Part shown: piece after piece, positions 14,076 to 43,897 of the stretch
How the letters are laid out: each line of letters opens with the position of its first letter
Numbering within the stretch: position 1 is the stretch's first letter
Assembly (NCBI RefSeq): GCF_021869535.1
Contig: NW_026262690.1
Span: 82,770,001-82,834,000, forward strand
Length of the DNA stretch: 64,000 nucleotides
Reading direction: 5' to 3'
Source: Mytilus californianus
Lineage: Eukaryota
Program-made: the position numbers and the translations under genes
Notes under the pieces: generated by a model
Told to the model about the DNA's origin: nothing
Databases searched by the model: none
The model's input: the letters and a program-made list of their open reading frames with translations, nothing else

Positions 14076-17000
14076 ATGATGGAGAAGGAAAGCGTTCTAC
14101 TGCAGCTAGTAAGTAAACACAATCGTTTTCCTTTTTATAATTTTGTATTTTCATCATTCTTATTTTTCTTTTTCTGTTTTTTAAAAGATGGGTTTACTCG
14201 GAGTCTACATATGTTTGTCCATTAAAGAGGAACCAGTGACCTTTTTAGTTTTTGTTTATGCTTTTTATATTGTTTCATATTACCGGATGTACGTATAAAG
14301 TGTATTTTCATTTTTAGCTTATAAGACATGATAATAACCTTGCGATTATTCAGTCATGTTTTGTGGTATATGTATTCAATTGTTACAAATGATTCATCTT
14401 CAGTGTTCTCTTGGTTGCATTCCTGTTTTAATCATATTAACTAATGAATATGCACAAATGATAATTGCTCGTTCTTACCAATTGTACCCAGTTCTCGTAT
14501 GCTTTAAAGAATACATTTTGTTTTTAGATTTTCAGTTTATAAAATATGTAGTGGTGATAACATTAAGTTTGCACCCCTGCATGCTAAGTTGACCTTAAAC
14601 GACTTTTGCAGTTATATTAAAATCATTGTAGTGTTTATATGTTCTCAAACGTTATTTGCTTTTGGCTTTCCAAATTGTTACTCATTAGTGAGCCTAAGAA
14701 GATTATTCCAGAAAAAAAATGTGATGTTCTCCCTGATATGTATCTGGTTTTATTTCAGAATATTGGAAGGCAACCCCTACACATTGCAGCATCAATCGGA
14801 AACACAGACACAATAACAAATCTAGTGGGCCGTGGTGCTGACATTAATTGTACAGATGAGGTAAACATATATGTTACTACTGGCCAAAGGAAAGATTTCA
14901 ATACCGATAAAACGGTGACTTTCGCTAGCGGATCAGCATCAGCTGACCTGGAGCCCCTGAATTCCTCCACGGTTTATAGTGAGTTGGTGTCAGTCAATTT
15001 AAAGTTGTCTGTGTCATGTATTGTGGATTTTTGTTAGTCTTTTCGTCGTTTATTATTCGTTGCTACATATTGCAAATGTCATAGCGGTTTATTTAGCTAA
15101 TGCAAATAACTGATATACACTGTTGTAACCTAAGGATAAGTAATCACTAATTCTAAAACAAATCAATAATGATATATACTGGGTGGTTTTGACGATATAC
15201 TGTCATAGTTTTGCCTCTGTCAAGACACCTTTAACTGAAAACTATGGGTTAAACAAGGTGTCACAGTGCGCAAAACCTACCATTTGTATGACAGTCTTAA
15301 TGGGCATAATGCATCTACATAGGTCAACTTAATCTGAATGAGATCCAGCCTTAGTTAAACAGCCATATCATACTTAGGGTAAAAATTGTAAATTCACAAC
15401 TAAAATGTATAAATTAAATCATGCAAGTAACAAAGAGCTAGAAAATGTGCGCATTTTTTTCATATTTTCTTTTATTCCTTTGCCAGCAGCATCGAACCAT
15501 CTACATTGATATAACAGATTTAGTATCTGGAATAATTTTCGGTATATATGATGAATTTATTTTCATACGTACGCTCGAGGCAAAAATGTTAGAAGCCAAT
15601 TACTTAAAACAATGCGGAGCATCAAAGCCAACAGAACAGACAAAATCGTTACTTAGACTTGCAATCTTATTTATGTAACTTCTCATGAAATTTACAACAG
15701 AAAAGTAATATTTAAATTATTAGCTACAAACGATGGTGCCCCTGTGAACTGAAAGGCATAAGTATAAAAATAAGAAGATGTGGTATGATTGCCAACGAGA
15801 CAACTCTCCACCAGAGACCAAATAATGTAGAATTCAGCAACTATAGGTCACATTACGGCCTTCAACACTGAGCAAAGCCCATGCCGCATATCAAGCTATA
15901 AAGGGCCCAGAAATGACAACATTACTGTAAAACAATTCAAACGAGAAAACGAACGGCCTGATTTATGTACAAAAGAATTGATCAAAAACAAATATGATAA
16001 CCAGCAACAAACGACAACCATTAAATAACAGGCTCCTGGCTTGGGACAAGCACATACCGAATTTGGCGGGATTAAACATGTTTGCGGGCGTCCAATCCTC
16101 CCCTTAACAGTGGTTTTACAGCACAACATAAGAACAAATAAAAACTTCAGTTGAAAAGGCTTAACTAATCAGCTCGACACACAGCAAAAAAAAAAAAAAA
16201 AATCACAAAAAACACAACTAGTTCAAAGCCAATAACAACAAATAACAACTAATAATGTTATATTTGGTCTAACAATTTTGAATACTTAAATATAGATAGC
16301 AGAATGGTGTCAGATTCGTCACTTCAGCATTTTACGGATTAAAAAGAAACTTCATTAACTGTTAAATAATTTGAAAAATATTTTTTGAATTATCATATCA
16401 ATTCCTTTACATTATTGCGAATTATTTGTAATTTAGTATGGGGACACGCCACTTCATTTAGCCGTGTCACGTGGACACGATCATGTTGCTGCATTGTTGA
16501 TAGCACTTGGTGCAAATTTAGAGGCCGAAAATAAGGTAGGATATAATCTGTTTTATACCAATTTGAAATAGGTTTGATATGTGGGAAACAAATGAAAATA
16601 GTATGTATTCAGAATATTACATTACTTCTATGAATAGTTTCAGTTGTTTTTGATGGTTTGTTGTACTATAACATACAATTCTTAGTTATCTGTAAAAAAA
16701 AAAGGAAAATTAGGGATGGCATTTTGGCATCTGAAGTTTGTCGTTATATCTATAAATGAAATATATATATGAAAGAATCATGATATCCTGAGATTTGCTT
16801 GGTATTTCAATGCGTGTTCTTCATAGGTAGTGTTACAGTATTAAATATGCCGATCGTGTCCACTCGTCTGATCTGAGTTTGTGCGATTCAGGCAGATCTT
16901 GATTTGTAAAAAAGATCGAAATTGATATTTCGTCTTGAGCTTCTAACAATTGTGTTTCTGCTACTTTTACTTTGACAATAAGAAGCATGTATGTATTTTT

Positions 17001-19115
17001 ACTTTGACAATATGGACATATATATACATATATTAATTTTATATCTTGGATCTGTTAAATGTTTATTATTTTATCAAAAGTATTAATAAAGCATACAAAA
17101 TCTATAATCGAGATATAGTTTTCAGATAACAAGAAAATGCTCTCATTATGACAATATACATATGAGAAAGTTCAGTTTGAAATATTATTATTTCTCTGTT
17201 TTAATAGGTGAAGTTACAAAATAATTTAAAGTATTAAGCGTTTCATTTGCATCTGCACTGTTAACAATTATATAGATATTTTAATTCCCAGTATTTAATA
17301 ATTTCTATGTTTATTTAAAGGAAGGCCATAAAGCATTATACATAGCTGTGATGGATAAAAGTCCTCGCATAGTGGACATATTACTCAAATTTGGTATCGA
17401 TCCTTGTGTAGTAGAATGGGTAACTTTTCTTCTAAACTTTATTAAGTGATAATTTTTTGGGAGCCAACAGTCTTGGTACAATGTAATCTCATGTAATTTT
17501 TTTCTTCATTATTTTACGATTCTATAGATGTTTTTATCCTTAAGTGTTAATTTCAAGTATTGGCTTTCTTTTTCCAACTATTTTAAGCGACATGTTTCGC
17601 GGTCTAAGATATTTTGATACCAGTGTGATCGCCTGATCTGTAGTATTACCAATTGTGTCTTGTTTCCGAATGTGACATTTTCTCAGTGGTAATTCGCATG
17701 GCGAGTGATGAATGCATAGCAGGAGACGCACCACGTCTCGCTTCTTTTGGCGTTCATGCAATTACTTCGGGTTTTAATTGTTGCCTTGATTTGTGTCTTA
17801 TTGGTCATTTGAGAGATTTGAACATCGGTAAACTACGCTGGCCTTAATTTAGTGTGTTACAAGTACCATAGAGTAATATAATTTCTTCAATATTTGTATT
17901 TTTTTATTTTTTACGTTTTTAAAATAACAAAAAAATGCAGTATTTTGAAAACGATAGATACATATATTATATAGCTGCTGACTATGCAATTGTGTCATTT
18001 AAGAGTTAAATTGGACTTTTAGGATTGGGCTACCAACAGTAATGGCTCCAAAGAGCATCAGATATTAGAGGCCTTTGACAGACAGTGTCAGCTAATTCCT
18101 GGATTCAGAAATGGGTATTTATAGGATTGTCTTTATACTTAAATCACCCTCAAAATTGAGTTATGATGATGTGTAGTAAAGCAAACATAGCTTAATCAAT
18201 CAATCAAAATTAATTTTAAATCCTTTTTTTCCTTATCATAATTTTTGTGTGATTTTCAATATCAGTGACAAGATGTCTTGGTACGTAAACTTGATTTGTA
18301 ATGTAATAAAATGTTGAATTATTCTAAACACTAAGGTTATATAATCCCCAGGCAGAGATTGCCTTCGTCGTATTTGGCATGGATATTCGGACTTCTCATT
18401 TGATTTAGCATTCCAACTGTTTAGATTCGAAAGTTACTGCTAAGTCTTTAGTAAACGTAACGCGTGTCTGGCGTATAAAATAATAAGCCTGGTATCTTTA
18501 GTGAATTGTTTTTTTTTTTCTTTTCTTTTCATACAACATTTCTAGAATATTTTTAATCTCTAATATATTTATAACGGGTTATTTGCTTAATGGTTATCTA
18601 TCTGTTTTGGGGATTGTGTTTTTATACGCTTCCTGGGAAACCTCTTTTGTGCATTTTCATATTTCAGGTTTGTCAGCAAGGAACTTGTTTCTATTCAACC
18701 ACACCAGGCATGTAACTGTAATTCTGTGCAAGTTGAAGTTGACACCACAAAGATCAGTAGACCGTTTGTTCTCCAGCTTTACAAAATGCAACCTGAATTT
18801 GTCAATACCCAATACCATCTACAAACTTCTGAACAGTATTTTAGTGACATATATGAATTAAGAGCATGGGACTGTAAAGAAAAAGAAATTCAACTAAAGG
18901 TTCAAGTAAATAGTCTAGTGAGACCCAATAGACAACTGAAATTTGTATCTTTAGAAAACTGTTTTGGACGTTTAGATGAGTCCGATAACACGTTCGTGAA
19001 TACAGAAGATTTGCAGGTAATTGTTATTGTTAACTCAAATACAAAATTATAGTACCATTTATTTTCCAGAGAATAGTAAAGATACTTTTCTGTCGACTGT
19101 ATCTCTGTTGCCTAC

Positions 19116-19150
<35 letters not shown>

Positions 19151-22100
19151 TCCGAAACTGTTTTTTTTTTCTGAATGCAGTAAAATGAATTTAATTCAAA
19201 AATTCAAAGTTCGTCTTTCTTTAGCTAGAAAAAGTAGAGGTAAAAGCCAGAAGACACTTTCTACTTTTAATTGGACTCACTAAAGTTCAAGATATATCAA
19301 AAGGTTACGAGTAACCAAATCATCGGTTTCCACAGTGTGTGAAAGAAACGTTTTTTTTAACACTTTCAGGTAATAAAGTTGGTGCCAAATAAAGTACACA
19401 TGATACGCGCACTTCTGAAATTAACTTTGCCCCGAGGGAGTAGAGATTTTGTTTTTAAAAAAAAGTATTCAAAGTTTATAATTCTACAATTAAGATATAT
19501 CCTTAAAACCATGTCAGTACCAGAGCACTGTTTCTCTGCAAAAAAATCAAAGAAATTAACACTCTCTAGAAACAATCCCTATCACTTTTATCAGTATCTT
19601 TGAGATTCACAGTATGTGAGAATGTTTAATGCTTTTAAATTAACTAATTATCTAATAATGTCATGAATTTAACTTATATAGAAATTGAATGCTAAAATAA
19701 ATGTCAAGCTGTGGCCGCCATTACGTATTGACAACCTCGTCTAATGAACCGTATCACTGAGCACCGAAATCTTTACAAGGACCCTTGTGGTTGTCCTACT
19801 GTTAAGATACATCGGCTTACTACTTAATTGATATAGTCATCGAATGCTAAAATAAATGTCAAGCTGTGGCCGCTATTACGTGTTGACAACGTCGTCTAAT
19901 GAACCGTTTCACTGAGCACCGAAATCCTTACTCATACACTTGCGGTTGTCCTACTGTTAATAGACTTCGGTTTACTACTTAATTGACTATAAAACTTTCG
20001 TCTGCGCTATGAATTCATGTAAATTAACTTTGTATCGAGTTTTGCTTTGACAAAAGGGAAATGTAGGGTATATGTCAGTAAGACTGCAACCAAACGATAT
20101 CCAGAAAGTGACATGCAGTTTTAGAAAAGACATGTGTATCAACCCGATGAAAGAACGGATACACTAAACAAAGCTTTATTCATTCAAATACTAATATACA
20201 CTTAACAGCGGTATGGTACAATATATTGTGTTTTTTCTTTCTCTTTTCAGACAACTGTGTCGCTCCATCTCAGAATTCAAGATGGCGTATACAACAAGTT
20301 TGTAATAATATCGGAAGAGAAGATTGAAAAAATAAAAATTTCGAATTCAGATACAATATTTCATCCAAACGTTATGCCTGGTGCAAAAGTATATATACCA
20401 ACAAATGCACTAAGAAATGACACAAGCGTCTCATTTAAAGTACGTTTACGTTATAATAAGCTGTCTTTGTTTGGTCATCGATATTACAAAAGTCAGCATC
20501 TTTTTCATAAGAAATCCGTTGACGGTTTTGAAGATATGATCTAACGCATAGTATAAAGATATTTAAAACGGCAGGGGTGTAAATAATATGGGGGTTTCTT
20601 TCTTGTTTTTCTTTTTGTGATTTTTCCCATTGGTTACAGTGCTTCCAGTGGGTGAGTTCTTTGTGTACCTGTTTGCATAGATTTTTAGCAACCGTGGCAT
20701 CTTAACACTAGAAAGATTATGCAAGTTGGTCAAGATTTCTGCGTAATTTTATCACAAAGGTTGGTTTCTATTGGGAAGTGTGGTTAAATTGTCAAGACTG
20801 ATATATTTAAGGCGGTCTTGTTTTGGTCGGCTTGTTTGTGATTTTTTAACAGGTGTCTTATTGATTTTCCGTTTTAGGGTTCTACGTTTTTATAAAAACA
20901 AAGAGAAGTGTCTTCTCGGAAGTGGTATGGCCTTTATTGACTGTGATGAGTCTGCTCGGAAGTGGCGTGAGTTTTAGTGACTGTGTGGAGTCTGCTCGGA
21001 AGTGTCATTACCTTTATTGACTGTGTGGAATCTGTTCCGGATTGGTCTGGCCTTTATTGGATTGTGAAATTTTAATTTAAAATGATAGATTAATGGTACA
21101 ACAAAGTAGTTTTACTCGTACTTATTTATTTTCTTTGCCGTGTAGTTGTCTGTCTTTCCTCGACATATCGTCCTGAATATGAATGAACTATTTGCCACTG
21201 GAAGTTAAGCAACCAACAATCAATTTTTGGTAGTTTCTTGTTTTAGTGCTTTTCATGAAGTGATTTTAGAATGCGTACTTACCTTTTTGTTTTCCATTGT
21301 TTGGTGATAAAAAAAAATCAAAGATAGAGAGTTGAGTTGCCTTAAGTTAAAAGTTTAATTTTTCAAAATACTTATACATCATATTTTTTGGTATCGACTG
21401 TTTTGTCATCATTCGTACTTTGTGTAACTTTCATATATTTTTTAAATCACTAAATGTGATAGCCCATGTCTGCCTCTGTTTTAGAAACTACATATTTTTA
21501 TCGAATGACCGGACTATTAATTGTTTAATGTATTTTATGTTTGGTTGTTTTTCAGGTAATTGATACAACAGAATTAAGCGATGAAGTTATAGCAGGAAGG
21601 ATATTTAGTGAAATTTTAGTTATCAATACATTTAAAAATATCCAGCCACAACAAGATGTAACAATAACCCTACCTCTCCGTTCCAAAACTGACTGTGATG
21701 AGTTAGTTGTACTCGCATCGAACAAGGTTCGTCCAGACTGCGTGGGTGACTGGCAGTTAACTGAGCCTACTGATATAACCAGTACAGGATCAGTATCTTT
21801 CAATACTGATATGTTCTCATTGTAAGTGATTGAACACTGATGTCTTTCATAATATGTTTTTCTCTTTTTATTAACCTTTTACGGATGTAATGAATGAATT
21901 CACATGCTTAATCAACCTAATCAAAGCGTTCCAAAGTTGCTTTCATATGGTCCCATATGTCTGTACTTTATGTGGGTTACTATGTATAGAGTATAATAAC
22001 AAAAATAACGAACTCCAAGGAAAATTCAAAACAGAAAGTTCTTTATCAAATGGCAAAATCAAAAGCTCAAACGCATCAAACGAATGGAAAACATCGGTCT

Positions 22101-25100
22101 TATTCCTGACTTGGTACAGGCATTTCCTTATATTGAAAATGGTGGATTAAACCTGTTTTTATAGCTAGCTGAACCCTTTCACTTGACAGTCGCATAGAAT
22201 TCCATTGTATTGACAACAACATGTGAGCAAAACAAACGGACGCAATAGGTAAAAATATCAAAAACTGGTGTACAACAGTCAACATTGTGTTATAATCTTA
22301 ATCGCTATAAAAACAAATACTTATTTCAACAAAGAAAAACAAAATGGCATATAGACACCCTATGGACAAATGGAGTATATTTGAGGCAATAGACTTTTAC
22401 CGATGTTTAAAATTTTTAAATTATTTTAAATATACAAAGAAAGAGGAAAAATACGAGAGATTCGCATGACGGAAAAAATTATCAACAAACATACCGAACT
22501 TCAAGGTAAATTCAAAAAGGGGGAAGTCCATAAAACCTGACAAAACCAAACGCTCGACTATATCAACCAACGTATCGAATGGAAAACAATTGTCAAATTC
22601 TGGTGGGTAAACCTGGTTCTATAGCTAAACAAGTGAGACCGATGTATTGACAGTGTAAACATCGTCAGTAATGCATGCGTCAACCATATAACTTGGTGCT
22701 ATCTGTTTGCTTGGCAATAAGCACTTAGCTATACAGTTCCATATACGAGATGACTGATTTATTGCCCGGACTAACTGACTATTTCAGCAGCATCACGCCT
22801 TATATGTATTGATTTCATAGAGAATCAAGGAAATCTTATTCAACCTAATCGTGGCTTTCTGAAAGTTGTTGGGTTTCTTTAAAATAATCCGAATACTACA
22901 ACATAAAGTTATATAAGCTGTAGATAGCTTGAAACTATTATACTAATATGTTTACATTCCCTTAGATACTTGTAATCTTCTAAACTCCGATCTACAAATT
23001 ATTCCTTATACAAAAAATCCCTATCTCTTGATTCGTGCAGATTGTTTCCAAACGTATTTACGTATGGTATTCAAACCTTTGAGAGCTTCATCTGTTTATC
23101 TGTATAACGATGCACGATTACTTTTCATCTTCATTTATTTTTTGATAGTTTTTAAATATGTAAATCAATTTGTTCGCAATTCTTTTTTCTAACGCTAGAC
23201 TATTTTTGGTAGTATGCAGGTTGAATGCTGAATCATAATGACATTTTTCACATCTAAATTGAAATTACTTCTTTCCATATTGAAATTTCTCAGTTCCAAC
23301 TTGAAAGTGGAAAATGCAAACTTAATACTCAGAAATGTCTAGTTGGAGGTGAGAAATTTCAAGTTTGAACAGGGTTGAGAAATTTTAACAACAGAATGTC
23401 CCTACAAGTATTGTAGATATCAGCTGTTATAGTAATAAACCCAATTCCTCCTTTGGATGCGACTTCTGGTGTATTGCATCGTGCTCTTATTCAACCAAAT
23501 CGTGGTTTTCTGAAGGTTGTTGGGTTTCATTAAAATAATCCGAATACTACAACATACAGTTATATAAGCTGCAGTTAGCTTGAAACTACCATACTACTAT
23601 GTAGCGATTCCACATTCCCTTAGAAACTTGTAATCTTCTGAACTTAAATGCATTCACTAATCACATATTTTAGATTTGTAGTTGTGTCTCGAACCTCAGT
23701 GTCCTCAGAATCTAGCTTCTCAGATATTCATGAAACACTATGTACTCTAATGGAATATAAAAGAAAAGTTGTGATAATGATTTTAACAAAGGAGGTACCA
23801 GAAACTGGTGGAGAGCTGTACATTGTTGTGCATTGTGTTTTGCATGAAAAATCGAATGACACACAAAAGTTGTGGGAAGAAAAAGGGTATAATCTAATAG
23901 GGGTTTCAGATCAACTGTTCTGTTTGGTGAACACTAAATTTCAGGTAAATTGAAAATAATATCTTATAGTTAAAACAATGACAACATAGCATAGTATAGT
24001 TCTAAAAAACACATGATATTCATGTTTTTGTCTGTGACACTTGTTTTGTAATGAACGTGTTCAGGTATAGTTGGTACAAAAAAATTAAATATTATGCACA
24101 TAATATAAGAACTAATATCGTTAGAAGCAACATAGGCAAGATGTGCATGCGGACGATAAATCCTTAAATTCCTATATGGAATACTGAATTTCTGAAAGCA
24201 GTTTATTGATCACCCCCGGTTTTTTGTGGGGTTTGTGTTGCTCAATCTCTAGTTTTCTATGTCGTGTTTTGTATACTGTTGTTTGTCTTTTGGTCTTTTT
24301 CTTTTCTTTTTTTTTGCCATGGCGTTGTCAGTTTTATTTCGGCTTATGAGTTTTAATGTACCTTTGGTATCTTTCGCCTCTCTTTCAGCAAAGTCAGCAA
24401 CGTAAAGTTTTCTTCTAGGTGTATATCTACTTGTAATTTTAATGCAAGGCAACGTTAGTTTACCGATGTTCAATTTCCATAAATCAGGTAAGCTATACAT
24501 CGAGGTAAAAAAAAATTTAAAAACGAGGGAATCGCATGAACTCCAAAAGGAGCGAGATTGGTGTGTCGACATGATAATCGTCTCTTGCTATGCATGCATC
24601 ACCAGCCTTTAATAAAGTTGATGAGTTTTCAGACATAATCCTATTCATGATGGGTTCTGTATATTCGGGGAATCTTTAGTATCTTATAGCATAGAAAATT
24701 GAAAGACTTTAAAATCAGTTGATAGGGTTTTACTAGAAGCTGAAAAAATATTATGTATACTTAAAATTTGTTAAATTTCAGATTTCATTATCAGGTAACA
24801 TTGTTGAAATATTTCATACGAAAAATATGGAATTATTATTTCAACTATGCAAAGAAAGTTACAGAATATTTAATGTAACAATCGCAGACAAAGAATGTAA
24901 ACCCGGAGGAACTATAAAGGTGCATCTCGCCACAGCTAGACAAAATATTGGAGATGTTAAAGAAGATGACGTTATTTGTATTTCTTGTGGTAGTAACAGA
25001 CCAAAAACCAAAAGGATGGATGATTTAACATCAGTGTTGTCCTGTCGTTTGTCCTTCAATATGGAAGCTTTGAAGGTCAACGAACAAACAAACATTGACA

Positions 25101-26218
25101 GTAATTATATTTGTAGAACTTTTTATCCTATTTGTAAATAATGTTATGCTTTACATACCGTATAATATAATTTTGAATCCATTTACCATATGTTAACTAA
25201 TGCAATCTTATATACGTTTAAAACATTATAACAATGTAATGCTTTTTTGTAATTATGTCCGTGTGTAAAAAGGTTAACAGAAGCACATACACTAAAATGT
25301 GCGCACGTTCAATGCTTTTACAACCCAACAAAATTTTAAAAAAAGAAGCATTGCAATTCTTATAATTACATGTGTATGCTACAACCATGAAATTACCGGA
25401 ATTGAACAGAGACATTCGTTTGTTTATTCTATGCAATGTTTTAAGTTGTTAAGGCGAGCACGTGCAGTCAAATTTTTTACATTTCATACGAAAAAAGATA
25501 TTATTGGCCAATTAAAATTACAGATTCGTATGCAACCTTTATGATATGTTATTATATAATATCCAATCCCTCATTGGATAACCTACATATATATTACACA
25601 AGGTAAACGCTTTAATTTCTACGCTAATGCTCAATGTCAATATTAACGTCTTTCAATTAACCAATTACAGTGTTCGAAATGTATTAAGCTGGCAAATAGT
25701 CGTTCCATAAGCAAATTTCACTGATCAGGAATTAAACGCATGCGGCTGGAACACTCATTGCAATACTGTTGCTTTAGGCTGCTAATTCGACCTTGTCACC
25801 TTGAAAATGTTAATCATGTGTCAAACATGTGCCAAATAACTAGAGAGGGGAATATATGCACGATACCTGATGTAGAAACTGCACAATTCTTTCGGGTTTT
25901 GTAGCCTGCAGTGGTATCAATCTATTACAAATCATGCTTCTGCGTAAAAAGTATTTGGTCAAATCGTATGCCATTATACCATGCATGCATTTTGGGTTAG
26001 AAGTATCTCGTTTAATATATTACAAGTTTACTTTACACATATTTTTCTTTCTCCTATGCGTTGGCATGTTTTTGTTTCAGGTCAAAAGGCAAAGCTCAGA
26101 AAAATGTAAGTTCAATCTAATAGTGAAACATGAAACTGTCAAATCGGGTAAGAGACGCCGAACAATACATGAAATACAAAATCGGATAACAGAAGAAAGA
26201 ACAGAATTCCGGGGGTAA
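14076..26218 (+). CDS. Ankyrin-repeat + ZU5-ZU5-UPA protein (ankyrin/DTHD1-like, no death domain seen). Exons: 14076-14108, 14759-14860, 16437-16535, 17321-17419, 18023-18114, 18668-19016, 20251-20439, 21556-21821, 23674-23944, 24782-25075, 26081-26218 (about 643 aa; first and last exons tentative)
   Basis: All junctions are GT-AG and phase-consistent. ANK motifs: GRQPLHIAASIG, GDTPLHLAVSRG, GHKALYIAVMDK. ZU5-like segments FVIISEEKIEKIKI...PGAKVYIPTNAL and SFNTDMFSLFVVVSR parallel ankyrin YFAVVSR..PQVQAVFPEGAL. UPA-like segment VVHCVLHEK...KFQISLSGNIV parallels ankyrin RCFCMTDDK...IYVDCFGNLV. Alignments were done by eye from memory. Confidence 0.85.
15770..16178 (+). mobile_element. High-copy non-autonomous interspersed element (AGATGTGGTATGATTGCCAATGAGACAACTCTCCAC family)
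   Basis: About 9 copies or fragments in the window: 15770(+), 27490-27760(-), 27985-28040(-), 29575-29790(-), 31990-32165(-), 38325-38372(-), 39270-39556(-), 51845-52190(+), 57420-57540(-). Confidence 0.85.
19687..19991. repeat. 155-bp tandem duplication
   Basis: GAATGCTAAAATAAATGTCAAGCTGTGGCCG at 19687 and 19842. Confidence 0.92.
20909..21060. repeat. ~39-bp tandem repeat, ~4 copies
   Basis: GTCTGCTCGGAAGTGG...CCTTTATTGACTGTG units. Confidence 0.85.
24215..24385 (+). mobile_element. Interspersed repeat (CACCCCCGGTTTTTTGTGGGG family)
   Basis: Fragments also at about 860-950(-), 11800-11950(+), 37990-38170(+), 39780-39975(-), 46420-46520(+) and 53835-53945(-). Confidence 0.7.
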
Positions 26219-26369
26219 AATTACATTGATAAACGAAAAAACAAGTATATTTTAAGAATAGCCAAATGAACTCAATTTTATCGATTAGCAACTGTATTGT
26301 TTGTGTGTGTAAAATTGAAGAGTTCGTGAGCTATAATGTAAACCCAAAGCATTATTTATTTTAATTTAC

Positions 26370-26800
26370 TGCGTCACTGATGAGTCTTTTGTAGACGAAA
26401 CGCACATTTAAATCCTGGTATATATGATGGGTTCACTTACAACCACTGTGTCGATGTCACTGCTGGTGGAGGTTTCTTCCTCGATGGCCACTAGCCCAGT
26501 GGTCATCACTTCTGTATTGACATGAATTATCATTGATATGGTCATAATGATAAATTACTGATTATAAAACTTGATTATAAAAAAATTTCAAAATACTAAT
26601 GATGTTCTACCTCAAGGATAGATGATCGTAGCTGTATTTGGCAAAACTTTTCGGAAGTTCGGTCCTCAATGCTCTTCAACTTCGTACTTAATTTGGTCTT
26701 TTAAACTTTTTTATTCGAACGTCACTGGTGGGCTTTTGTAGACGAAACGCGCGGTCTGGCGTACAAAATTTTAAATGTGGTTATCTATGATGAGTTTATT
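26370..26800 (+). mobile_element. Interspersed repeat related to the 46.7-kb family (GTAGACGAAACGC unit present twice)
   Basis: Direct internal repeat at about 26372 and 26720; shared core with other copies. Confidence 0.7.
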
Positions 26801-28701
26801 TGTTAACTTCTGAATTAGTGTTCGAAAGGTCAGTTAATTTCAAGAAAAAAAAAACACAAAACAATGATCTGCGGACAAACATATCCACAAAACAAAACAT
26901 GGAAACGCAAGTATGTTAAACATGGACAGGATAACAAATGTGCTTTGCATTGTTTTTCTCCATGATCTATTTCCGTTTACAAAGAGAAATAGGCCAGTTA
27001 TACCTGAATTTGTTTCATACTGGGGCCATTTAAAAAAAAAACAAATCAGAGCGCCATGAGTATTCTTCTAGCTTTTGACAAAATTATGCTTATTTTAAAA
27101 TAGTTACTTAAACTATACACGCCGGAAGATAGCCAAAAGCTGCAATTTTAGCATATTTTGACAAACTTTGAGTATTGATCCAAAACGTATAAGCCCATTC
27201 TTAACTTAAAGCAAAATTTCTTTTGAAAGTATAATAAATAGTGTCGTCCAGACACAACATTATTAATTTTGGAAAGCGAAGTCCATCGGTGTAAAACTTA
27301 ACAATACCATGTAAAATTTGCATTTTAACAAAATGCCTTCAACTGCAACTCTGAATGACATTTAAAATATGCAGATATGTAAAATGGTTGAAATTGTTCA
27401 ATAATATATGATATAGGCATCCTCTTTCATACTCAATTTTAAGTAAGATTTGAAGACTTTTAGTGTATGAGCCTGTGAGAAAGCCAATGCAGTCAGGAGC
27501 CTGAAATTCAGTGGTTCTCGTTTTTCTCTGTCTATTATATTTGTTTTTCGATTATTGATTTGCACATAAATGGGGCCGTTGTGTATCTCGTTTGAATTGT
27601 TTTACATTTTGTCCAATGGGAACCTATTATAGCTTACTATATGGTATGAGGTTTTTCTCATTGTTGAAGGCCGTACGATGACATATACATCGCTTAAATT
27701 TCCGTTATTTTGGTATTGATGGATAGTTGTCTCATTGGCAATCCTACCACATCTTCTTATTTTTTATACAGAGGAATTTAACCCGACATCTTTGTATTCA
27801 ACAAAAGTTTTTGAATAACCTTTTGCACACCAGAATGATGATTGACAGTAGCTTTTTTTTGTCCTTTTCACTTTTGAAAGTCTGTGTAAACTTGTTCAAC
27901 CACATAAAAAAAGGTGACAGCTAAATACACATATTTTACTTTGTTAGATCTAAGTAGTCATAGTTGCTTACTTCTGCGTCATTTGGTCTCTGGTGAGGAG
28001 TTGTCTCATTGGCAATCATACCACGTCTCCCTATTTTTATATAGAAGTAGGTTCTGTGGAAATATTGCAAATTTTGTCCATCCCATGAACGATTGAAACT
28101 TAAAAAATAAACCCACAGGGTTATTTGTTATCTATGTCAATTAAAAGTTTAATTAAAATATAATTTACATGGCACCAGCTTTTTATAGCATGCGTCAAGA
28201 TGTCTTGTAGGCAAAAATTTCTTCACGTTTGTTATATCATAACGACATAAATTCAGTTTCAAGGAAAATTTTCCATTTGAACCCCTCTTTATTGCGGAAT
28301 AATAATAGTCATAAATAAAATGGGGGGTCAAATTAATAAATTGTGATATTCTCCAATATTTAAAAACAACTGACTTATATAATAGGATATAGAAATAGAG
28401 TTGTCTTTTGGGAATATGACTAATATTGGTCGCCCAATATCTGTCTAATCAATATTAAATGGATATGATTAGACAGAAATGTGTCGTTACTTTAAACATT
28501 CCCCAAAAGTCGTCCCTAAAATCGTATTGATTTCGCTATTTTCAATTGTCAATGTAAACAAACAATGCAAAATGATAAATACAACCATCAATGCATTTAA
28601 ACATAGTTTTGCAAGTAATTTATGATTGAGCCTTGTTTTGAGCCACACCGTAGTAGTTCTGAAATATTTCTGCAATAATTAACTAATTTGATTTTTTTTA
28701 G

Positions 28702-28748
28702 CTTCAATGGATTCAGATTGGTACATACCAGACCCAGAAACAAAATAG
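28702..28748 (+). CDS. Candidate alternative terminal exon of the ANK-ZU5 gene (xSMDSDWYIPDPETK*)
   Basis: Strong ttttttttag acceptor at 28701. Phase-1 compatible with donors T|GTAAGT (26105) and G|GTAAGA (26147). No homology support. Confidence 0.35.
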
Positions 28749-31700
28749 TACCCATGGTTTAACCTTTGGTACAAAGAAATACTTTCTTGAGACATTTTAC
28801 ATGCTGTTAATTGTCAGGGTGAACTGGCGGATATTTATTACATGGGTAGAGATAGAAGGTAGACATCGGCAGTTCTCTTGTAATATCAAAGTGTTTTGTA
28901 TAATTTAATGAATTATATATTGATTGCTGATCTTTTGAATTCTCTATTTAATTTATTTGTAATTTTCTAGACTCATAGGGATTTAAATCTTGACATATTG
29001 TAAATACACTTACATCATGTTGCCATTAAATATAATTTGATATCACGCATTTATCTTGATGTATCATGAAATAAGGCCACCCCTCCTCCCCCTCTGAATT
29101 ATTGAACGCTGTCATTTTGCAATATTCATAACATCATGCAGTGTATATTAGATCCACCTTTTGTGTGTCCCATTGACTTATAACCCACATTGAATTTGAT
29201 TTATGTGCAATGAATTGTTAACGTCTTTAAAAAGGCGTTAACGTCCAGTCTCAACTATTTCATCCATATTCAGAACTACTTTAACTTCAAAGTTCACGGA
29301 GTCATCAAATGAAAATTACGCATATTACCAGGACATATGCCGTTTTCGTAATCACTTAGCAACTTTTGACTCCCCTCATTCGACGGAGTGAGCACAGGCA
29401 TACACACATGTATGGGAAGGGATATTCAAAAGGAAGTCTTTGCATGTGTTTTTTTTTACGCTGTCTCTGCAATTATTTTTGTCTGCGTAGAGCGTAGAAG
29501 TTTGTTTTGATGCTATATCAACGTGTTTTGATGTTGGGAGTAACATATATAACAGCAGTGGTTTTCTTTGATTGCGGTTTTTCATGGTTTGGTTTTTCTT
29601 TCATATAAATAGAAATTAGGTCGTTGGTTTTCACTTTGAAATCGTTTTACATTTTGGTATCCCGCTGCTTACTATACGGTACATGTTTTGGTCATTACAT
29701 GAGGCCATACGGTGACGTGTAATCCTTAATTTGTCTTTTGGTGTTAGGTGAAAAAATGTCTTATTACTAATGATACCAAATCTCCTTATTTTTTTACAAC
29801 TGTCCAAATATAATCAAGGCGATGCAGAGCTTGAAATATAATGAAGGTGCTTTGACGAATAGGTTTCTGAATAAATATGGCTTTTTCATATAAACTAGTT
29901 AAATCAACATTGCTGTGTCTGAACAACGATGCTTTCTGGACAAAACCAAATGTATTTACAGTTTAAGCATAAAAACCAGAAATACGACAAAACTGAACTG
30001 AATTATGAAGAATTTAATTGACCCAGGACAATTTAGAGCTTGACGCATTGTATAGACATCTGTCTGTTGTTGAACACAGCATTTTGAGCTCTATATGTTT
30101 TCTGGTTTATTTGTGTCGTTAAGCTGTTGTCACATAGACGTATATAAAACATCTCATTTTACACGTGACAATCGTAGTTGTGTATTCCATTTTAAAAAAA
30201 AACATTGGAGCACGTTTTAATCGAACGTGAGAATATATTGGTAAATCAAGTTCAACATCAACCATCCTGAACCCATATTTTTTGTTAAACAAATTACGTA
30301 ATTTGGTTTGCAGCAATTCATATTAAAAAGATATAACCTGCATTACTAAATAAATACATGACGAAAATTAAATTTTATAATTCAGTTTTAATACTAGACA
30401 CATGTAAGAGTGCATCTTATTGCACTTGAGCGTATGAATACAATGTAATACTGAAAGGTGTATATGAATTCATGTGCAAAAGCAAAGATGTAAAAACAAT
30501 ATATATATATCGCATAAAATGAGCAATAGCTTAAAGTATTTATAATACTGATAAATAATGAAATGTTTTCTTCTTTTGATTTTTAGATGTCATTCGTTTG
30601 TCTCTATCTCGTTCATTGTTCTCTATATCTGTAGCACACTTTTGTCTGAAATAAAGAAATTGAAAAAATTAGCATTAAAAAATATGCATTATGTGATAAT
30701 ATATCTGTACACAACATGTATAAGTAAATAGTGTTTTGTTCGCCATTATGTGTGTTACTGTTACATTGTATTTAAAAAACTTAAAATCTAAAAAAAAAAG
30801 CATAAGGGAGACGCCGATTTTAAATAATGTAACAAGACAGGGTGATTAAACAAAATTAAGATAGAAAATTGATACCGCTGTTGCATAGGTTTTACCATCT
30901 AAAATTTAAAATATAAATAAAAGCTTTATTTTAAGAAGTTTGAATGATTGTTTGTTGATTTACGTCCAGTGGCAAGACTAATCTGGAGAAATTATCGATT
31001 TAACGTTAAAAAAATAATGTACAAGAACTGATATTTTTTTTTTGAAACTGCGCATATAAACTCCTTCTCCCTTGTTTACTTTAAACTATCGCGACAAATT
31101 CCTTTTCTCGTCTGAACGAGATCTCTTCACGCGTGTATTCGTGCTGTTATTTACAATAAGAGTCATTACAAACATTAAACACGTACATTGCTATAGTATG
31201 TTATAGGTATGACATGAAGTTAAATGCTACATCGAAGCCAAACAAATAACGAAAAAATAAGCAGCTATATTTACATGCAATTAAGCCTGTTATCCTGAAT
31301 TTCAACAATGGTTAAAGCTAGCTTTACTTTAAGTTTTTTTTTTAAGTTTAAGCATATATATATTTGATATTCTTGATTTACTGCGATCAGAGAAAGACAG
31401 ATGATGGAGCAGAATGAAAGCTAACATTCAACGTATAAGCTAAAGATTTTAATTTATTAGTTACGTTGTGTATTGCAATTTCAAATTTACTTGTTTTCAT
31501 GTGACCTTGTTCTATGTATGTTTTATTATTATAATAATTAGTTTTAAATAAACTTATGACATAAATGTATTTTAAGTTGATCATTCTCTTGTTAGGTTAT
31601 TTAAAGCTATATTTACAAAATATTTAATTTGTAAGTCCTCTAAAAAAACTACACATATAAGCGTTTCTGAACAATTACATGGTAAACATATAAATAGGAG

Positions 31701-33435: not shown

Positions 33436-34501
33436 AAGGGGTTGCCCGTAAATGGTTTCTTGTGTTATCCTTATTGTACATCAATTTAATACATATATTT
33501 AACTATAAGTATAACAATTCATTTTCAGCAATAACTGTCTGGTTATAATTTTAAAGTACAGTTTTTAATTAGACAATAATTCGTATTCTAAATTGTTATT
33601 TACACATTATGAATCTCAATTCTAAGAGATATATCTTAAAACTGGAATACTACGTCAAAAAATTATGTACGAAATGTACATGCATGCTGCATATTTAAGA
33701 ATAAGATCAAAAATATTTAAGATTTTTTCTACATTTCGAACAATGCTTATGCTTACCCGACACCATACTCAGCTGTTTAATAACGTTTAACAAAACAGCT
33801 CAATCTAATTATGATAAATGAAGAAATTCTAGCATATCAGTATTCAGATAATCTGCTTTCGACATATTTTTCTTAATTATAAATCGACCAGTCTGTGTAA
33901 AATTTCCAAATCAGAACACAGGACATATTCTATCAATCATATAGTATACATAGCAAATAAAATTATTGTACGGATGCCAGGTAAAACAAATTATGTCAAT
34001 AAATGATTTATTAAATAATTGATCAATAGATCAACCATTTACATGTGTTTAATCAATAAAACAGGGTTGATAAATTGTGGCATGTTCACACAATTCAAAT
34101 TTGGCAAACATTTAGGGTCTGCTATGTTTTCAACACCTTCTATGTTTAATCTTGTATCATTATCATATTTTTTAATTGTTTATTATATATGTAATATATA
34201 TGTGCAGTAAAATAATTAGTAGTATAGTGATTTAAGACTGTACTATATTCGTACTTTTTTTTATTGCTGAGACTATGATACATATGATATTTCAAGGCAT
34301 TCAATTAGGCTTTTGTCAAATATCATGGTTCTTTTTGGTGTAGGGTATAAATTTGTTTCAGAGATATTGCAATATGAATTCACTTCAACAACATTTATAA
34401 TATTAAGACCGGGAAGTGAAAATATGCACGCAAAGAAGTTATCAGACCTTACATTGACGATAAACATTGCCATACAACAATAATATATTTGAAAATCTTA
34501 C

Positions 34502-34730
34502 TTTGTTCCCTGTAATGTTTTCTTTCTCTATGTGTGGGAGCATTTATCTCAAATGTACAACGTGGCTGATATCCAGGTTTGTGTTCATCAAATGCCGTGC
34601 TTGTAAATTGATCCCCATGGTGTTTCCTTTCTGTTCGACACCAGCTCTGCTCTTTTTTCATTTCCACGGCACACCATGATTCCCTTGCTTCTCCAATAGC
34701 CCTAGCATCAGTTGGAGATAGTTTCGACAT
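34502..34730 (-). CDS. SPATA45: SPATA45-like (spermatogenesis-associated 45; sperm microtubule inner protein), main coding exon. Short last exon unresolved (candidate 31896-31865, KVNMPETKQ*)
   Basis: MSKLSPTDARAIGEARESWCAVEMKKEQSWCRTERKHH...APTHRERKHYREQ ends at donor A|GTAAGA (229 nt, phase 1). The motifs RESxCxVE, RxxK(R)H and C-terminal HxERKH(F/Y) match SPATA45 as I recall it. Confidence 0.65.
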
Positions 34731-34785
34731 TTTGCAACTAACACATGTAACCTAACAACGATCAATGACGCTATAACGTTCCGCT

Positions 34786-34798
34786 GTTGCCAAGTAAT
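34786..34798. promoter_or_regulatory. Near-consensus RFX X-box upstream of the SPATA45-like ATG
   Basis: GTTGCC-A-AGTAAT versus consensus GTNRCC(N0-3)RGYAAC (one mismatch), 56 bp upstream of the ATG at 34730. Confidence 0.5.
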
Positions 34799-34856
34799 AA
34801 ACAAAGGCAGAAACTAAAAGTAATTGATAATTTAACTCAATCGTACTTGAAAATAC

Positions 34857-35242
34857 GTATTGATTACTTATAAATGACAATTAATTTCATTTAACTATCA
34901 TTGTCCACTTAACTTATATCAAATTTAAATGGAACTATATAACAATGCGAATTAATTTCTGGTTTCGTTTAAAATCAAGTCCGGATCGAAGCTTATTTTC
35001 CGACTTTAAAATGTTATTTATCAGTAAAATTTTAAATGTCCGGTAATTTAAGTATTGATTACTTATAAATGACAATTAATTTCATTTAACTATCATTGTC
35101 TACTTAACTTAAATTAAATTTAAATGGAACTATATACAATTCGAATTAATTTCTGGTTTCGTTTTAAATCAAGTCCGGATCGAAGTTTTATTTTCCGAAT
35201 TTAGTATAATGTTATTTTTTTATTACATATGTCCGGTAATTT
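34857..35242. repeat. 195-bp tandem duplication upstream of the SPATA45-like gene
   Basis: GTATTGATTACTTATAAATGACAATTAATTTC at 34857 and 35052. Confidence 0.92.
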
Positions 35243-37321
35243 TTGTTTAAAGATTTGTTTACATTCCACGGAGCAGTATTTTATGTTGGCCTTGTCCAAT
35301 TTTAAAAAGGAAAAATATAGGACTTTAAAATTTATTCTGACTTTCATTATGATGAACCAATTGCAAGTTAAAATCAACATCACTTCGAATAAAATTTAAG
35401 ATAATATATGGAAATTCAAGTTAAGTTGCATATTTTTTTTTATTTTTGTGTTCATCCAGAACGTTATATATTGATCAGCGAAAAAGTTACTTATAATAAT
35501 GATTACAGATTATCTTCACTTAATCACGCTTTGCGGGTACGCGAGACTTTAAGGGAATGGCCAATCACCATCACCACCTTTCTCCTTGTTCCACGGCAGA
35601 TGAAACATCGAACTGTCTTGGAATTTCATTAATTATACGAATGATACTGACTTTTCTTGAATGCACGTATTTGGATTCGTTGCCGAATGAGAGCAGCGAA
35701 CCAGCAGTAAAATGCAAATCAGTGTGTTCAAGGGGCTGGTGTTTTACAATATCATTATTGATTATGAATGTTATTGATAAATAAAAGAGAAAAAAAGAAA
35801 GCCATTGCAAAGTTGGTGGAGTTGATTTCACGATGCCAGTCGGACGAAATTAAAAATTGTGAAGTCGTCAAACTAAAAAAAATTCAAGAAGTTATCAAAG
35901 CCGTTATGGGGATTTTCCTATGCAGATTAATAAAAAGAGATGTGGGATATGCGTTATTAAACCGACAGCAACCCAACAACGTTGAGTTACAGTCCTCAGT
36001 TAGGGTTCCCCACAAGAAATATATAGACCATCTTTTTTGTTACATATATGCCTTTGGTATGAATTAATTAAAGGCATGATTTGTAAAATGTTTTTCTCTA
36101 ATATCACGAAATGCCATGCAGTTTAAATTTTCTGACACTACAAAAAAAGGAAAAGAAAAAACCCAATATAATCGGTTATTCAATGGTTAAAATGCGATTT
36201 CTTCACAGAAATATCCAAATTTACATACAGATTTGAATGTTAAAAACAACATCATTATGTGATCTGCATCATTTTAAAGATGACAAATATTTGAAATAGA
36301 AATAACATATTCGAAGAGTGATTAACTAAGTTATCTTTGGCTACTTGTTTCTCTGGAGCCTTTGCCCTTACGGGGAAGTTTTAAATCAGATAGATTTTGG
36401 ACTTGTAAATATCTGGACCACAAATCAAACTGATCAAAACGGGAACTCTGATATCTATTTTATAGAGAGAGAAAAAACATATGCAATACCAATATATTTT
36501 ACTAGTATTCAAAGGTAAAACGCATTTATTTAACTGATATTGATTCTTTTCTTTTTAAGAATAGTTTGTAGGAAACTTTTCTGAGTGTACATTGAACGAG
36601 ATAACCATGCTTATAGTTTGGAGCACATTTGCGTGTGGACATGATATCCTTTGGGTCCCCCATGAGTGGGAGTACTCCGAATGACCCACCCCATCCGCTC
36701 CTCCCACCCCACCCAGCCCCCACTACATGTATAGTAAAATTATGATTTATTTTTTATCGAACTTTTATGTATATTGACAGACATCATTTGGTATATAAGC
36801 TTGACGACTGATATATACACGGGTTTAAGGGGTCATTCGGAGTACTCACACTAAGGTGCACATAAACGGTATCCTATCCACGTGTACTTTTGGTTTGCAC
36901 TGGATGAGCATAAGACATAAATCCCATGAAATACAGTTGGAAACCAACACGACGCCTTCGATGTTGATTTTTGTGTCTACTACTTGACAGCTACTTCAAC
37001 AATAAGGTAAAGAACCAATGTATGTCAGACAGACGGTCCCAAAAATGCACTTCGGTCAAATTTTAAATTTTAATTCATCGACATACCTTTGCGATTTTTT
37101 ACAACTGATCACACAGTTTCCTTCTGTATTTTATTCCAACAATGTTTTAAAGAGTTTATATCAAATGAATAAATAAACACTCTGAACACGAACAAAGACT
37201 TTTTTTATTTCATATTAGTCCCTTACCCGTGCTGCTCATATAGGAATTAATCAATTGGTTTGGCGTCTTCTGTTGCAGAATTAAACTTTTTTTAACCTAA
37301 TCCTAATTCGAATAGTCAGTG

Positions 37322-40300: not shown

Positions 40301-40472
40301 TGTTGCCCTCCCCCTATTTTTCTCAAATCCGTTATTTTTTAATTTCTATTATTTTCGTGTTTTTTGTTTGTGTTAAACTAACATACATATACTAGAATAT
40401 TTTTTTTAATTTGCTAGTTTACTATCCACAGCGGTCACTGACAATTAAATATAAAAGCCATGGAGTGACCTC

Positions 40473-40543
<71 letters not shown>

Positions 40544-43500: not shown

Positions 43501-43805
43501 TATGCTAAAGGTTGAATGTCGTGGCGTGTCAGTCTACCGTTGTTGATGGATAATTTGTCTGTTAGTAAATGTTTCAAAACACTATCACGTGGTGTGACTC
43601 CAAACTTTTTACAGGAATTATTGTACACCAGCACACTTGTTTCTGTTCCATCTTGAGTAGTTTCTGATGAAAACAAGAGAAACAATTATAGTTACATGTA
43701 GATTGTTATAGAGTAATGGTATGAAAAAAGTGTGGATTCTATTCAATATAACAATAAAAATTGTTATTAATTTTATTCTATAACATATTACTGTCGTTCC
43801 ATCCC

Positions 43806-43897
<92 letters not shown>

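Follow-up and report, generated by a model that had tools for sequence, protein, structure and literature searches.

ZU5-UPA modules scaffold the PIDDosome and the NLRP1/CARD8-type platforms, and to our knowledge they hand over to a death-fold domain in every well-studied case. Canonical ankyrins have 24 ANK repeats, ZU5-ZU5-UPA, and a death domain (DD). PIDD1 is an LRR-ZU5-ZU5-UPA-DD protein that cleaves itself at two HF/S sites, and its DD recruits RAIDD or RIP1. In NLRP1 and CARD8 the FIIND is a ZU5-UPA with a CARD after it, and cleavage of CARD8 needs distal His/Glu residues. UNC5 receptors have a cytoplasmic ZU5-UPA-DD. Apoptosis and immune adaptors are greatly expanded in bivalves.

We describe a gene in a 64-kb stretch of the Mytilus californianus genome (the window; coordinates are positions in it) and predict with good confidence that it encodes a DD-less ANK-ZU5-ZU5-UPA protein with a conserved tail, most likely a non-signalling adaptor or modulator. 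The domain order, ANK and then ZU5-ZU5-UPA, is that of the canonical ankyrins ANK1/2/3, and ankyrin-B (4d8o) is the best fold match. The window protein has three ANK repeats rather than 24 and lacks both a death domain and the C-terminal regulatory region. Identity to ankyrin is only 14-15%, and in the bivalve family to which the protein belongs the ZU5-2/UPA junction carries an HFS motif of the cleavage type. Like PIDD1, the protein places a repeat domain ahead of two ZU5 and a UPA, and the invariant HFS of the family, directly after ZU5-2, occupies the place of the second PIDD site. It differs from PIDD1 in having ANK repeats in place of LRRs (no LRR was found in the gene), no HFS after ZU5-1, MFS after ZU5-2, and no death domain for a RAIDD/caspase-2 type platform. 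It shares with the FIIND proteins the ZU5-UPA fold and an x-F-S at the junction; unlike them it has two ZU5 and no CARD or other death-fold effector after UPA. The UNC5 structure (3g5b) is also a ZU5-UPA fold match to the model of the M. galloprovincialis ortholog, but the window protein has one more ZU5 and lacks the ectodomain, the membrane span, and the death domain.

The gene extends from 14076 to 28762 on the + strand and has 12 exons; every intron is GT-AG and the ORF, of 634 aa, is intact. It encodes an 11-aa N-terminus, three ANK repeats, a linker, and then about 480 aa unrecognised by Pfam. The coding part of exon 1 (14076-14108, MMEKESVLLQL) starts ATG ATG and ends at a CTA/GTAAGT donor. 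The first-pass annotation had placed the start at ATG 14076, and we retain it: besides the ORF, the start codons and donor are conserved in the M. galloprovincialis locus (L002), and the peptide is similar to the MVEEAFLHAL start in paralog models. Three exons flanked by GT-AG introns follow, each an ANK repeat. The first (14759-14860, 102 nt, 34 aa, phase 0; Pfam Ank E 3.7e-6) and the second (16437-16535, 99 nt, 33 aa; Pfam Ank E 3.8e-9) are intact in L002, and the third (17321-17419, 99 nt, 33 aa; Pfam Ank_3 E 0.0022, Ank E 0.013) is also found by tblastn with the ortholog (P0003) and an M. californianus family member (P0004). A 92-nt linker exon with GT-AG borders (18023-18114, DWATNSNGSKEHQILEAFDRQCQLIPGFRNG), overlooked in the earlier exon set, was recovered by tblastn with P0003 at 91% identity.

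The remaining exons encode the part unrecognised by Pfam. Exon D (18668-19016; tblastn with P0003 and P0004) is predicted to hold most of ZU5-1, and residues 18-167 of the ortholog model align to ankyrin ZU5A/ZU5N. Exon E (20251-20439) would hold the end of ZU5-1 and the start of ZU5-2, and exon F (21556-21821) the ZU5-2 core, both from tblastn and fold alignment; the ankyrin ZU5 entries 3kbt and 3f59 align to ortholog-model residues 168-305 with Z 10.7-11. At the end of exon F, comparison with the family motif places M407-F408-S409 (21811-21819). Exon G (23674-23944) appears to encode the first half of UPA, from tblastn and the CARD8/NLRP1 UPA alignment, and contig X2 record 15 begins at 23674. 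Exon H (24782-25100), the second half of UPA, is covered by spliced contigs (X1 record 2, X13 record 9, X2 record 17), which align from 24772 since the end of exon G recurs in the 10 nt just before 24782. A word search with the exon H frame returned only a fragmentary M. edulis model (P0002), which joins a short donor at 23885 to 24795 and so lacks 23 aa of UPA. Splicing from 23944 to 24782 is supported instead by the RNA contigs and by P0003. P0002 has no record as an encoded gene. Another sequence, P0001, lies on a 1.35-kb genomic Logan contig and is uninformative for splicing.

The gene had been ended at 26218; it runs 2.5 kb beyond that position, through a 25-nt exon and a terminal exon. 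The former (26081-26105, SQKAKLRK-, GT-AG) matches P0002 and P0003 and accounts for the 25 letters left unplaced where X1 record 2 and X13 record 9 each align in two pieces. The terminal coding exon (28702-28762, IFNGFRLVHTRPRNKIVPMV) has its TAA stop at 28760-28762 and is covered by X1 record 2 (to 28865), X13 record 9 (to 28980), and X2 record 22, so that the 3′ UTR extends to at least 28980. The convergent gene reported downstream is present, as an LRR gene on the minus strand from about 37.1 kb. We considered whether it was the NOXRED1-like neighbour of Mytilus paralog A, but tblastn with that neighbour was empty in the window.

Contigs from three runs (X1, X2, X13) splice exon H to the 25-nt exon and on to the terminal exon with the stop at 28760, and the gene is transcribed at least across its 3′ half. 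X1 and X2 are presumed, as a guess, to be RNA, and their intron-free contigs argue for this. The RNA evidence covers the 3′ end, while exon 1 and the ANK exons rest on ORF, homology, and splice sites. A raw-read RNA run (X21, about 6% sampled) gave no reads on the exons of the gene, so expression may be low. All 12 exons are intact in M. galloprovincialis as well, where the ortholog is 83% identical to the window protein (its RefSeq model begins within ANK3). Between the two species dS is 0.21 and dN/dS is 0.34 overall, 0.24 in the ANK part and 0.37 in the tail, with the highest values (0.40-0.41) in ZU5-2 and UPA. The gene is real, and purifying selection acts on it.

Three ANK repeats had been noted upstream of the module, and that count stands: three exons match Pfam Ank, and scanning the window for the motif in all six frames reveals no others. 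The protein thus does not have the 24-repeat membrane-binding domain of canonical ankyrins, and its paralogs likewise have three ANK repeats, with an N-terminal cap. Pfam and single-sequence searches did not recognise the region that follows. Pfam ZU5 (PF00791) and UPA had no match up to E 10 on the exon pieces or on the ortholog, paralog, or oyster proteins, in which ANK was the only hit, and ZU5, UPA, and Death reached the gathering threshold on no piece and no family member. A phmmer search of PDB sequences with exons D, F, and G returned nothing relevant, single-sequence PDB searches with the pieces and full-length relatives gave no support for ZU5-ZU5-UPA, and neither the exon D frame nor P0002 had a usable match by ESM Atlas features.

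A profile of the family against the PDB has a single match, ankyrin-3 ZU5-UPA, at E 0.031 over two colinear stretches. An AF2 model was made on ortholog residues P0003:25-549, standing in for the window protein, from an alignment of only seven sequences; pLDDT is 63 overall and 70-90 in the core, with modest confidence in the first ZU5. In Foldseek this model matches the crystal structure of ankyrin-B ZU5-ZU5-UPA-DD (ZZUD, 4d8o) at E 1e-17, followed by 6m3q (1.9e-16), UNC5b (3g5b, 2.4e-8), ankyrin-R ZU5A-ZU5B (3ud1, 4.9e-8), and NLRP1 (7crw, 9.2e-7). VIA-align gives Z 15.3 across 395 residues to 4d8o, and aligns the NLRP1 and CARD8 UPA to ortholog-model residues 326-483 with Z 10.5-12.6. The model therefore strongly supports the predicted presence of a ZU5N-ZU5C-UPA supramodule. 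The first-pass annotation, which had seen this module in the letters, had also made it depend on profile support; for Pfam there is formally none, and this is outweighed by the fold matches (Foldseek E 1e-17 to 4d8o), with the family profile on the same side.

The family, which we defined from P0003, P0004, and P0010-P0013, has so far been seen only in pteriomorph bivalves (mussels, oysters, and pearl oyster) and is recognised by Pfam only as ankyrin repeats. Members include M. californianus LOC127738681 (P0004), M. edulis XP_071162721 (P0010), C. virginica LOC111113267 (P0013) and LOC111113130 (P0143), Saccostrea (P0012), and Pinctada (P0011, whose model has a tandem second module). These homologs have a common layout of three ANK and ZU5-ZU5-UPA at 24-37% identity to the window protein. 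In hmmsearch the family profile finds the window protein at E 4.5e-200, full-length and colinear (profile 2-502 against residues 118-624). A word search with family alignment A1 gave no additional members. A broad search with P0002 gave seven matches, among them short UPA fragments (P0005-P0007 and P0009) and a WD40 protein (P0008, eight stretches) that is a repeat artefact; alignment A2, which included the fragments, was distorted and was replaced by A3.

The protein ends 28 residues past the last UPA exon and therefore has no death domain. Tblastn with both oyster DD-like regions gave chance-level matches only in the window, and no ORF resembling a death domain was found there. In L002 both the tail (KLRKIFNGFRLV) and its frame are preserved, with TGA at the same codon as the TAA of the window. 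Mytilus paralog A, 37% identical and also without a death domain, has the same kind of end and an LRK.F.GFRLV tail, kept in its models from four Mytilus species; the motif common to both paralog groups is (K/R)LRK(I/A)F.GFRLV and is probably helical. The RefSeq models of the ortholog and of paralog A terminate at this tail. Absence of a death domain from the window protein, as first claimed, is confirmed by the spliced contigs from three runs and by the conservation of the tail. The DD-less architecture holds for two Mytilus paralog groups; oyster homologs probably end in a death domain. Three weak lines point to it: the C-terminus of P0013 matches Pfam Death at E 0.15 (profile positions 2-82 of 86), Atlas feature neighbours of the oyster C-terminus are all Death clusters, and AF2 gives the oyster DD-like region six helices (pLDDT 49) whose top Foldseek rows are death domains, none below E 1. 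Since oysters probably keep the domain, it has probably been lost in both Mytilus paralog groups and a short conserved tail has taken its place.

At the ZU5-2/UPA junction HFS is invariant in 10 family sequences, including paralog A and the oyster proteins, which also have a longer N-terminal cap than the window protein. The junction reads MFS in the window and RYP in the M. galloprovincialis ortholog, and no conserved nucleophile follows ZU5-1 in the family alignment. PIDD self-cleaves at HF/S after each ZU5; in its site the Ser is indispensable, the Phe has a structural role, and the first position tolerates change (PMC3210808). The PIDD-type motif is eroding in the window orthogroup, and from its sequence the RYP ortholog is predicted to be unable to use the site. 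In the window protein cleavage at F408/S409 is possible, because MFS retains the Phe-Ser of the self-cleavage site.

Several other explanations bear on these observations. It is highly improbable that a death domain sits in an unseen exon or alternative isoform and that the gene encodes an ordinary ANK-ZU5-ZU5-UPA-DD adaptor. The probable oyster death domain and the fact that rare isoforms drop out of contigs would allow for it; against it are the same spliced 3′ end in three runs, whose terminal exon contains the stop and runs on into UTR, the tail, frame, and stop codon position kept in M. galloprovincialis, the motif in a 37%-identical paralog of four species, RefSeq models that stop at the same tail, and the chance-level tblastn with the oyster regions. 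We also think it quite improbable that the gene is a decaying duplicate becoming a pseudogene, with the missing death domain and the missing HFS histidine as products of degeneration. The change to MFS and RYP, the raised dN/dS of ZU5-2 and UPA, the sampled RNA run without exon reads, and an N-terminus about 33 aa shorter than that of paralog A are what decay would produce, but an ORF of 634/635 aa and all splice sites are intact in two species at dS 0.21, dN/dS is far under 1, spliced transcripts occur in several runs, and the tail is kept between paralogs.

A cytoskeletal role as a miniature ankyrin, binding spectrin through ZU5-1 and a membrane protein through the three ANK repeats and unconnected with death-fold signalling, is unlikely. 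The top structural matches are indeed ZU5-ZU5-UPA of ankyrin-B, -G, and -R, spectrin-bound complexes among them. That ranking is partly a sampling effect, because we know of no PIDD ZU5-UPA structure in the PDB; moreover identity to ankyrin is low, the family has the PIDD-type HFS, and the oysters have a probable death domain and no ankyrin-like long C-terminal region. There is a modest chance that FIIND/PIDD-type self-cleavage at F408/S409 operates, freeing a UPA-tail fragment when the ANK-ZU5 part is degraded or displaced, which would then act on other UPA proteins. Phe-Ser is kept in the loop right after ZU5-2 at the family HFS position, and the UPA part matches that of NLRP1/CARD8. The sites of CARD8 and NLRP1 are SF/S, so a first-position His is not required (PMC3210808). 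The RYP of the ortholog, without a nucleophile, argues that cleavage is not under constraint in the orthogroup, and the C-terminal fragment would carry no effector domain. Rather more doubtful is a specific version in which mussels turned a PIDD-like ANK-ZU5-ZU5-UPA-DD adaptor into a DD-less brake on ZU5-UPA death-fold platforms: UPA and the tail helix would dock on or co-assemble with UPA-DD fragments of signalling paralogs and cap them, paralog A would still cleave at HFS, and the window copy would be a fixed, uncleaved decoy.

We favour the DD-less adaptor or modulator. The predicted protein would be cytosolic, with a short N-terminal helix, three ANK repeats, a linker, ZU5-ZU5-UPA of the ankyrin/PIDD/UNC5 type, and the 28-residue tail. 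Without a death domain it could not be expected to seed a PIDDosome-like death-domain assembly or to signal as its closest known relatives do, and it may regulate them. The ANK repeats and the ZU5-UPA surfaces could bind partners, sequestering them or competing with death-domain-bearing relatives. That it may act as a decoy or modulator in ZU5/death-domain signalling, as first suggested, is what we infer from this architecture.

Database entries for this family carry no label beyond uncharacterised ankyrin-repeat protein. A whole branch specific to one lineage thus escapes the Pfam ZU5 and UPA models, and domain censuses of molluscs are affected. Oysters, with a probable death domain, and two Mytilus paralogs, with none and a replacement tail, offer a natural comparison for ZU5-UPA acting alone, and a member that lacks the DD and may not cleave is a plausible regulator.

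The plus strand of the window, AT-rich eukaryotic DNA with zero N runs, encodes a small ankyrin-like protein. Three exons of 102, 99 and 99 nt (14759-14860, 16437-16535 and 17321-17419) match Pfam Ank in stop-free plus-strand frames from 14-29 kb (E 3.7e-6, 3.8e-9 and 0.013), and a motif scan of six frames across the whole 64 kb found no further ANK-like repeats, in agreement with the three reported in the first-pass annotation. A beta-rich exon series follows downstream. By tblastn of database-found relatives onto the window, combined with a splice-site check, we obtained a 12-exon model in which every intron is GT-AG and the ORF is intact (634 aa). Coding begins at the ATG proposed previously (14076; exon 1, 14076-14108). 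After the ANK exons come a 92-nt linker exon (18023-18114), absent from the earlier reading, exons D (18668-19016), E (20251-20439) and F (21556-21821), and four exons that assembled contigs also support: G (23674-23944), H (24782-25100), a 25-nt exon (26081-26105) and a terminal exon (28702-28762). The last two had been overlooked, and the gene ends at 28762, not at 26218.

RNA mapping covered 23650-29600, the region that decides the death-domain question. Contig X1 record 2 (568 nt, 0 mismatches) runs from the end of exon G through exon H to 25100, then through 25 letters that are the exon at 26081-26105, and on to 28702-28865. Contig X13 record 9, whose library is recorded as RNA-Seq, shows an identical structure and extends to 28980; in X2, record 15 covers exon G from its first base (23674), record 17 exon H and record 22 the terminal exon. 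The stop codon (TAA, 28760-28762) lies inside the terminal exon, with UTR beyond it. Intron depth is zero except at repeats. The gene is thus transcribed, at least in its 3′ half; the 5′ end of the model rests on conservation between the window and the M. galloprovincialis locus L002. The intron before 24782 closes with a repeat of the final exon G bases, AAATTTCAG, which is why contig alignments begin 10 nt ahead of exon H. Contigs back the 23944 to 24782 junction, and none support the shorter junction of the fragmentary M. edulis model P0002. That junction (donor after 23885, acceptor 24795) keeps the frame and removes 23 aa of UPA; contig X1 record 1 terminates at 23883, as expected for a branch point, and minor alternative splicing here is possible. 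The raw-read RNA run X21 contained no exon reads for 23650-29600 (about 6% sampled), so expression in that sample is low or absent.

In each of the four runs, three intronic segments (24247-24445, 26237-26833 and 27630-28226) reach very high depth (summed word depth as high as about 21,000) and show back-joints and numerous variant letters. Copies match window 38.3-39.6 kb and L002, and the segments resemble interspersed repeats that are abundant and transcribed. A minus-strand gene (about 37100-44300), convergent as had been noted, lies about 8 kb beyond the UTR. It encodes leucine-rich repeats of the RNI type (Pfam LRR_6 at 42838-43209, E 4.6e-5) and has a homolog called at L002:26842-29643. 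A 1.8 kb block in between (33845-35626) is 79.6% identical to L002:24122-25854, above the surrounding intergenic DNA; its 100-aa minus-strand open frame (34452-34751) has no Pfam match.

P0002 came from a word search with the frame of exon H, and an exhaustive search with P0002 gave two useful proteins: the ortholog P0003 (XP_076099328.1, M. galloprovincialis LOC143068869, 549 aa, 83% identity to the window protein) and the M. californianus paralog P0004 (paralog A; XP_052105976.1, LOC127738681, 690 aa, 37% identity). A word search with P0004 added proteins from M. edulis (P0010), Saccostrea (P0012), Pinctada (P0011) and two Crassostrea virginica loci (P0013, 866 aa, and P0143). Each carries an uncharacterised annotation, and ANK repeats are all that Pfam detects in them. 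L002 aligns with the window end to end (intron identity 72-80%, exon identity 83-88%). All 12 exons are present there, their frames and splice sites unbroken, among them exon 1 and ANK repeats 1-2, which the RefSeq model leaves out. The M. galloprovincialis RefSeq models of both paralogs (P0003 and P0135) start at a Met within ANK repeat 3, either because the annotation is truncated or because an internal promoter gives rise to a genuine ANK-less isoform.

In L002 the exon H region also occurs a second time (L002:5719-6067; 88% identity over 352 nt to window 24729-25079), inserted just upstream of exon 1 between the homologs of window 13959 and 13975; the window has no such copy. The Logan fragment P0001/L001 (84% identity to exon H) may be this copy or a similar one. 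The 90% cluster of paralog A, to which P0010 belongs, includes NOXRED1-like proteins because VDH94587.1 (M. galloprovincialis, 971 aa) fuses two adjacent genes; the window has no NOXRED1-like gene. In Pinctada imbricata P0011 (1132 aa), a ZU5-ZU5-UPA part is followed by ANK repeats and a second ZU5-ZU5-UPA, through either tandem duplication or a merger of two genes, and its low-complexity C-terminus lacks a death-domain signal.

Even at E 10, Pfam ZU5 and UPA match no exon and none of the ortholog, paralog and oyster proteins, and single exons searched against PDB found nothing. The seven-sequence profile of the family alignment has a sole PDB match at E up to 10, ankyrin-3 ZU5-ZU5-UPA (6m3p, E 0.031), in two colinear stretches on ZU5C and UPA. 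We modeled residues 25-549 of the 83%-identical ortholog with AlphaFold2, as a stand-in for the window protein and from this shallow alignment (mean pLDDT 63; 70-90 across most of residues 150-400). In PDB, Foldseek matches the model to ankyrin-B ZU5-ZU5-UPA-DD (4d8o, 492 columns, E 1e-17), AnkB and AnkG spectrin complexes (E 1.9e-16 to 3.4e-13), UNC5b (3g5b, E 2.4e-8), ankyrin-R ZU5A-ZU5B (E 4.9e-8), the NLRP1 FIIND (E 9.2e-7) and CARD8 (E 1.5e-3); unrelated folds appear only from about E 1e-3, with probability <0.2. With VIA-align, 4d8o scores Z 15.3 across 395 residues (model residues 18-507), ZU5A-ZU5B 12.9-13.0, one ankyrin ZU5 10.7-11 on residues 168-305, and the NLRP1 and CARD8 UPA 10.5-12.6 on residues about 326-483. 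The ZU5-ZU5-UPA assignment made by eye is therefore right at the level of fold, as judged on the ortholog, though Pfam sequence profiles do not recover it. The predicted boundaries in the window protein are roughly 130-279 (ZU5-1), 280-416 (ZU5-2), 417-594 (UPA) and 595-634 (tail).

The window protein continues past the last UPA exon with SQKAKLRKIFNGFRLVHTRPRNKIVPMV and then stops; the tail of the ortholog is the same. In M. edulis, M. galloprovincialis and M. californianus (two isoforms), models of paralog A terminate in ...RERLRKAFQGFRLVYKAVQRKDG. Because the motif is common to 37%-identical paralogs, with a stop close behind in each, it argues for a real, selected C-terminus and for an absence of the death domain that predates the split of the two Mytilus paralogs. 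In the family alignment the motif falls on the helix KLTEFLDKV, which in C. virginica precedes about 90 more residues. This oyster region matches Pfam Death at E 0.15 in P0013 (over positions 2-82 of the 86-position profile), and every one of its ESM Atlas feature neighbours is a Death-domain cluster (score 0.88, a lead only). A low-confidence AlphaFold2 model of it (pLDDT 49) has six helices; its Foldseek list is headed by death domains of Fas, FADD, TNFR1, ankyrin, TRADD and PIDD/RAIDD, none with an E-value below 1.2. From these three weak lines, the oyster proteins probably have a death domain. P0013 and P0143 (LOC111113267 and LOC111113130) barely differ as far as the post-UPA helix, beyond which they diverge into death-domain-like tails of 27% identity.

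The first-pass annotation did not mention an H-F-S motif directly after the last ZU5-2 strand and before a hydrophobic strand (...F[KR]xxHFS[IM][FY][AV]G...). It is invariant in ten family sequences: paralog A from several Mytilus species, three oyster proteins and both Pinctada modules. PIDD cleaves itself at HF/S behind each of its ZU5 domains, and the cleavage site of CARD8 and NLRP1 is SF/S, with Ser as the essential nucleophile, Phe as a buried anchor and a change-tolerant first position (D'Osualdo et al. 2011, PMC3210808). The window protein reads M407-F408-S409 (21811-21819, at the extreme end of exon F), the ortholog reads R-Y-P, and the model places the position in a loop between strands 289-294 and 299-304. 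Thus, judged by sequence, the family looks PIDD-like at this site, and the window orthogroup appears to have lost constraint on it. The window copy could cleave itself at MFS; the ortholog could not, at least through RYP. We consider FIIND-like self-cleavage that releases a UPA-tail fragment unlikely.

We regard a role as a small spectrin-linking ankyrin as improbable. Decay of the copy is less probable still: dN/dS against M. galloprovincialis is 0.34 overall (dS 0.21, Nei-Gojobori), with 0.24 in the N-terminus and ANK repeats, 0.30 and 0.40 in the two ZU5 domains, 0.41 in UPA and 0.37 in the tail, which places the entire ORF, both ends included, under purifying selection. There is very little room for a hidden death-domain isoform, given that spliced contigs carry the TAA within the terminal exon, the tail is conserved, and tblastn of both oyster death-domain-like regions gave only chance-level matches in the whole window; the absence of a death domain reported earlier holds.

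Full-text searches found no description of the bivalve ANK3-ZU5-ZU5-UPA family; ZU5 or FIIND fusions are reported generally in marine-invertebrate TRADD-N protein expansions (PMC8195603) and PIDD homologues in clams (PMC7836458). The window protein shares parts with ankyrins and PIDD but departs from defining features of each: it has 3 ANK repeats where ankyrins have 24, and ANK repeats in place of the LRR; it has neither a death domain nor a CARD and falls below Pfam thresholds for ZU5 and UPA. The gene encodes a constrained cytosolic-type protein that couples a small ANK module to a ZU5-ZU5-UPA frame and lacks any death-fold output. Because it lacks a death domain, it would be unable to seed a death-domain oligomer. 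A decoy or modulator is a reading that we hold tentatively; its likely role would be that of an adaptor or modulator, which may bind partners through its ANK repeats, ZU5-UPA surfaces and conserved tail helix.
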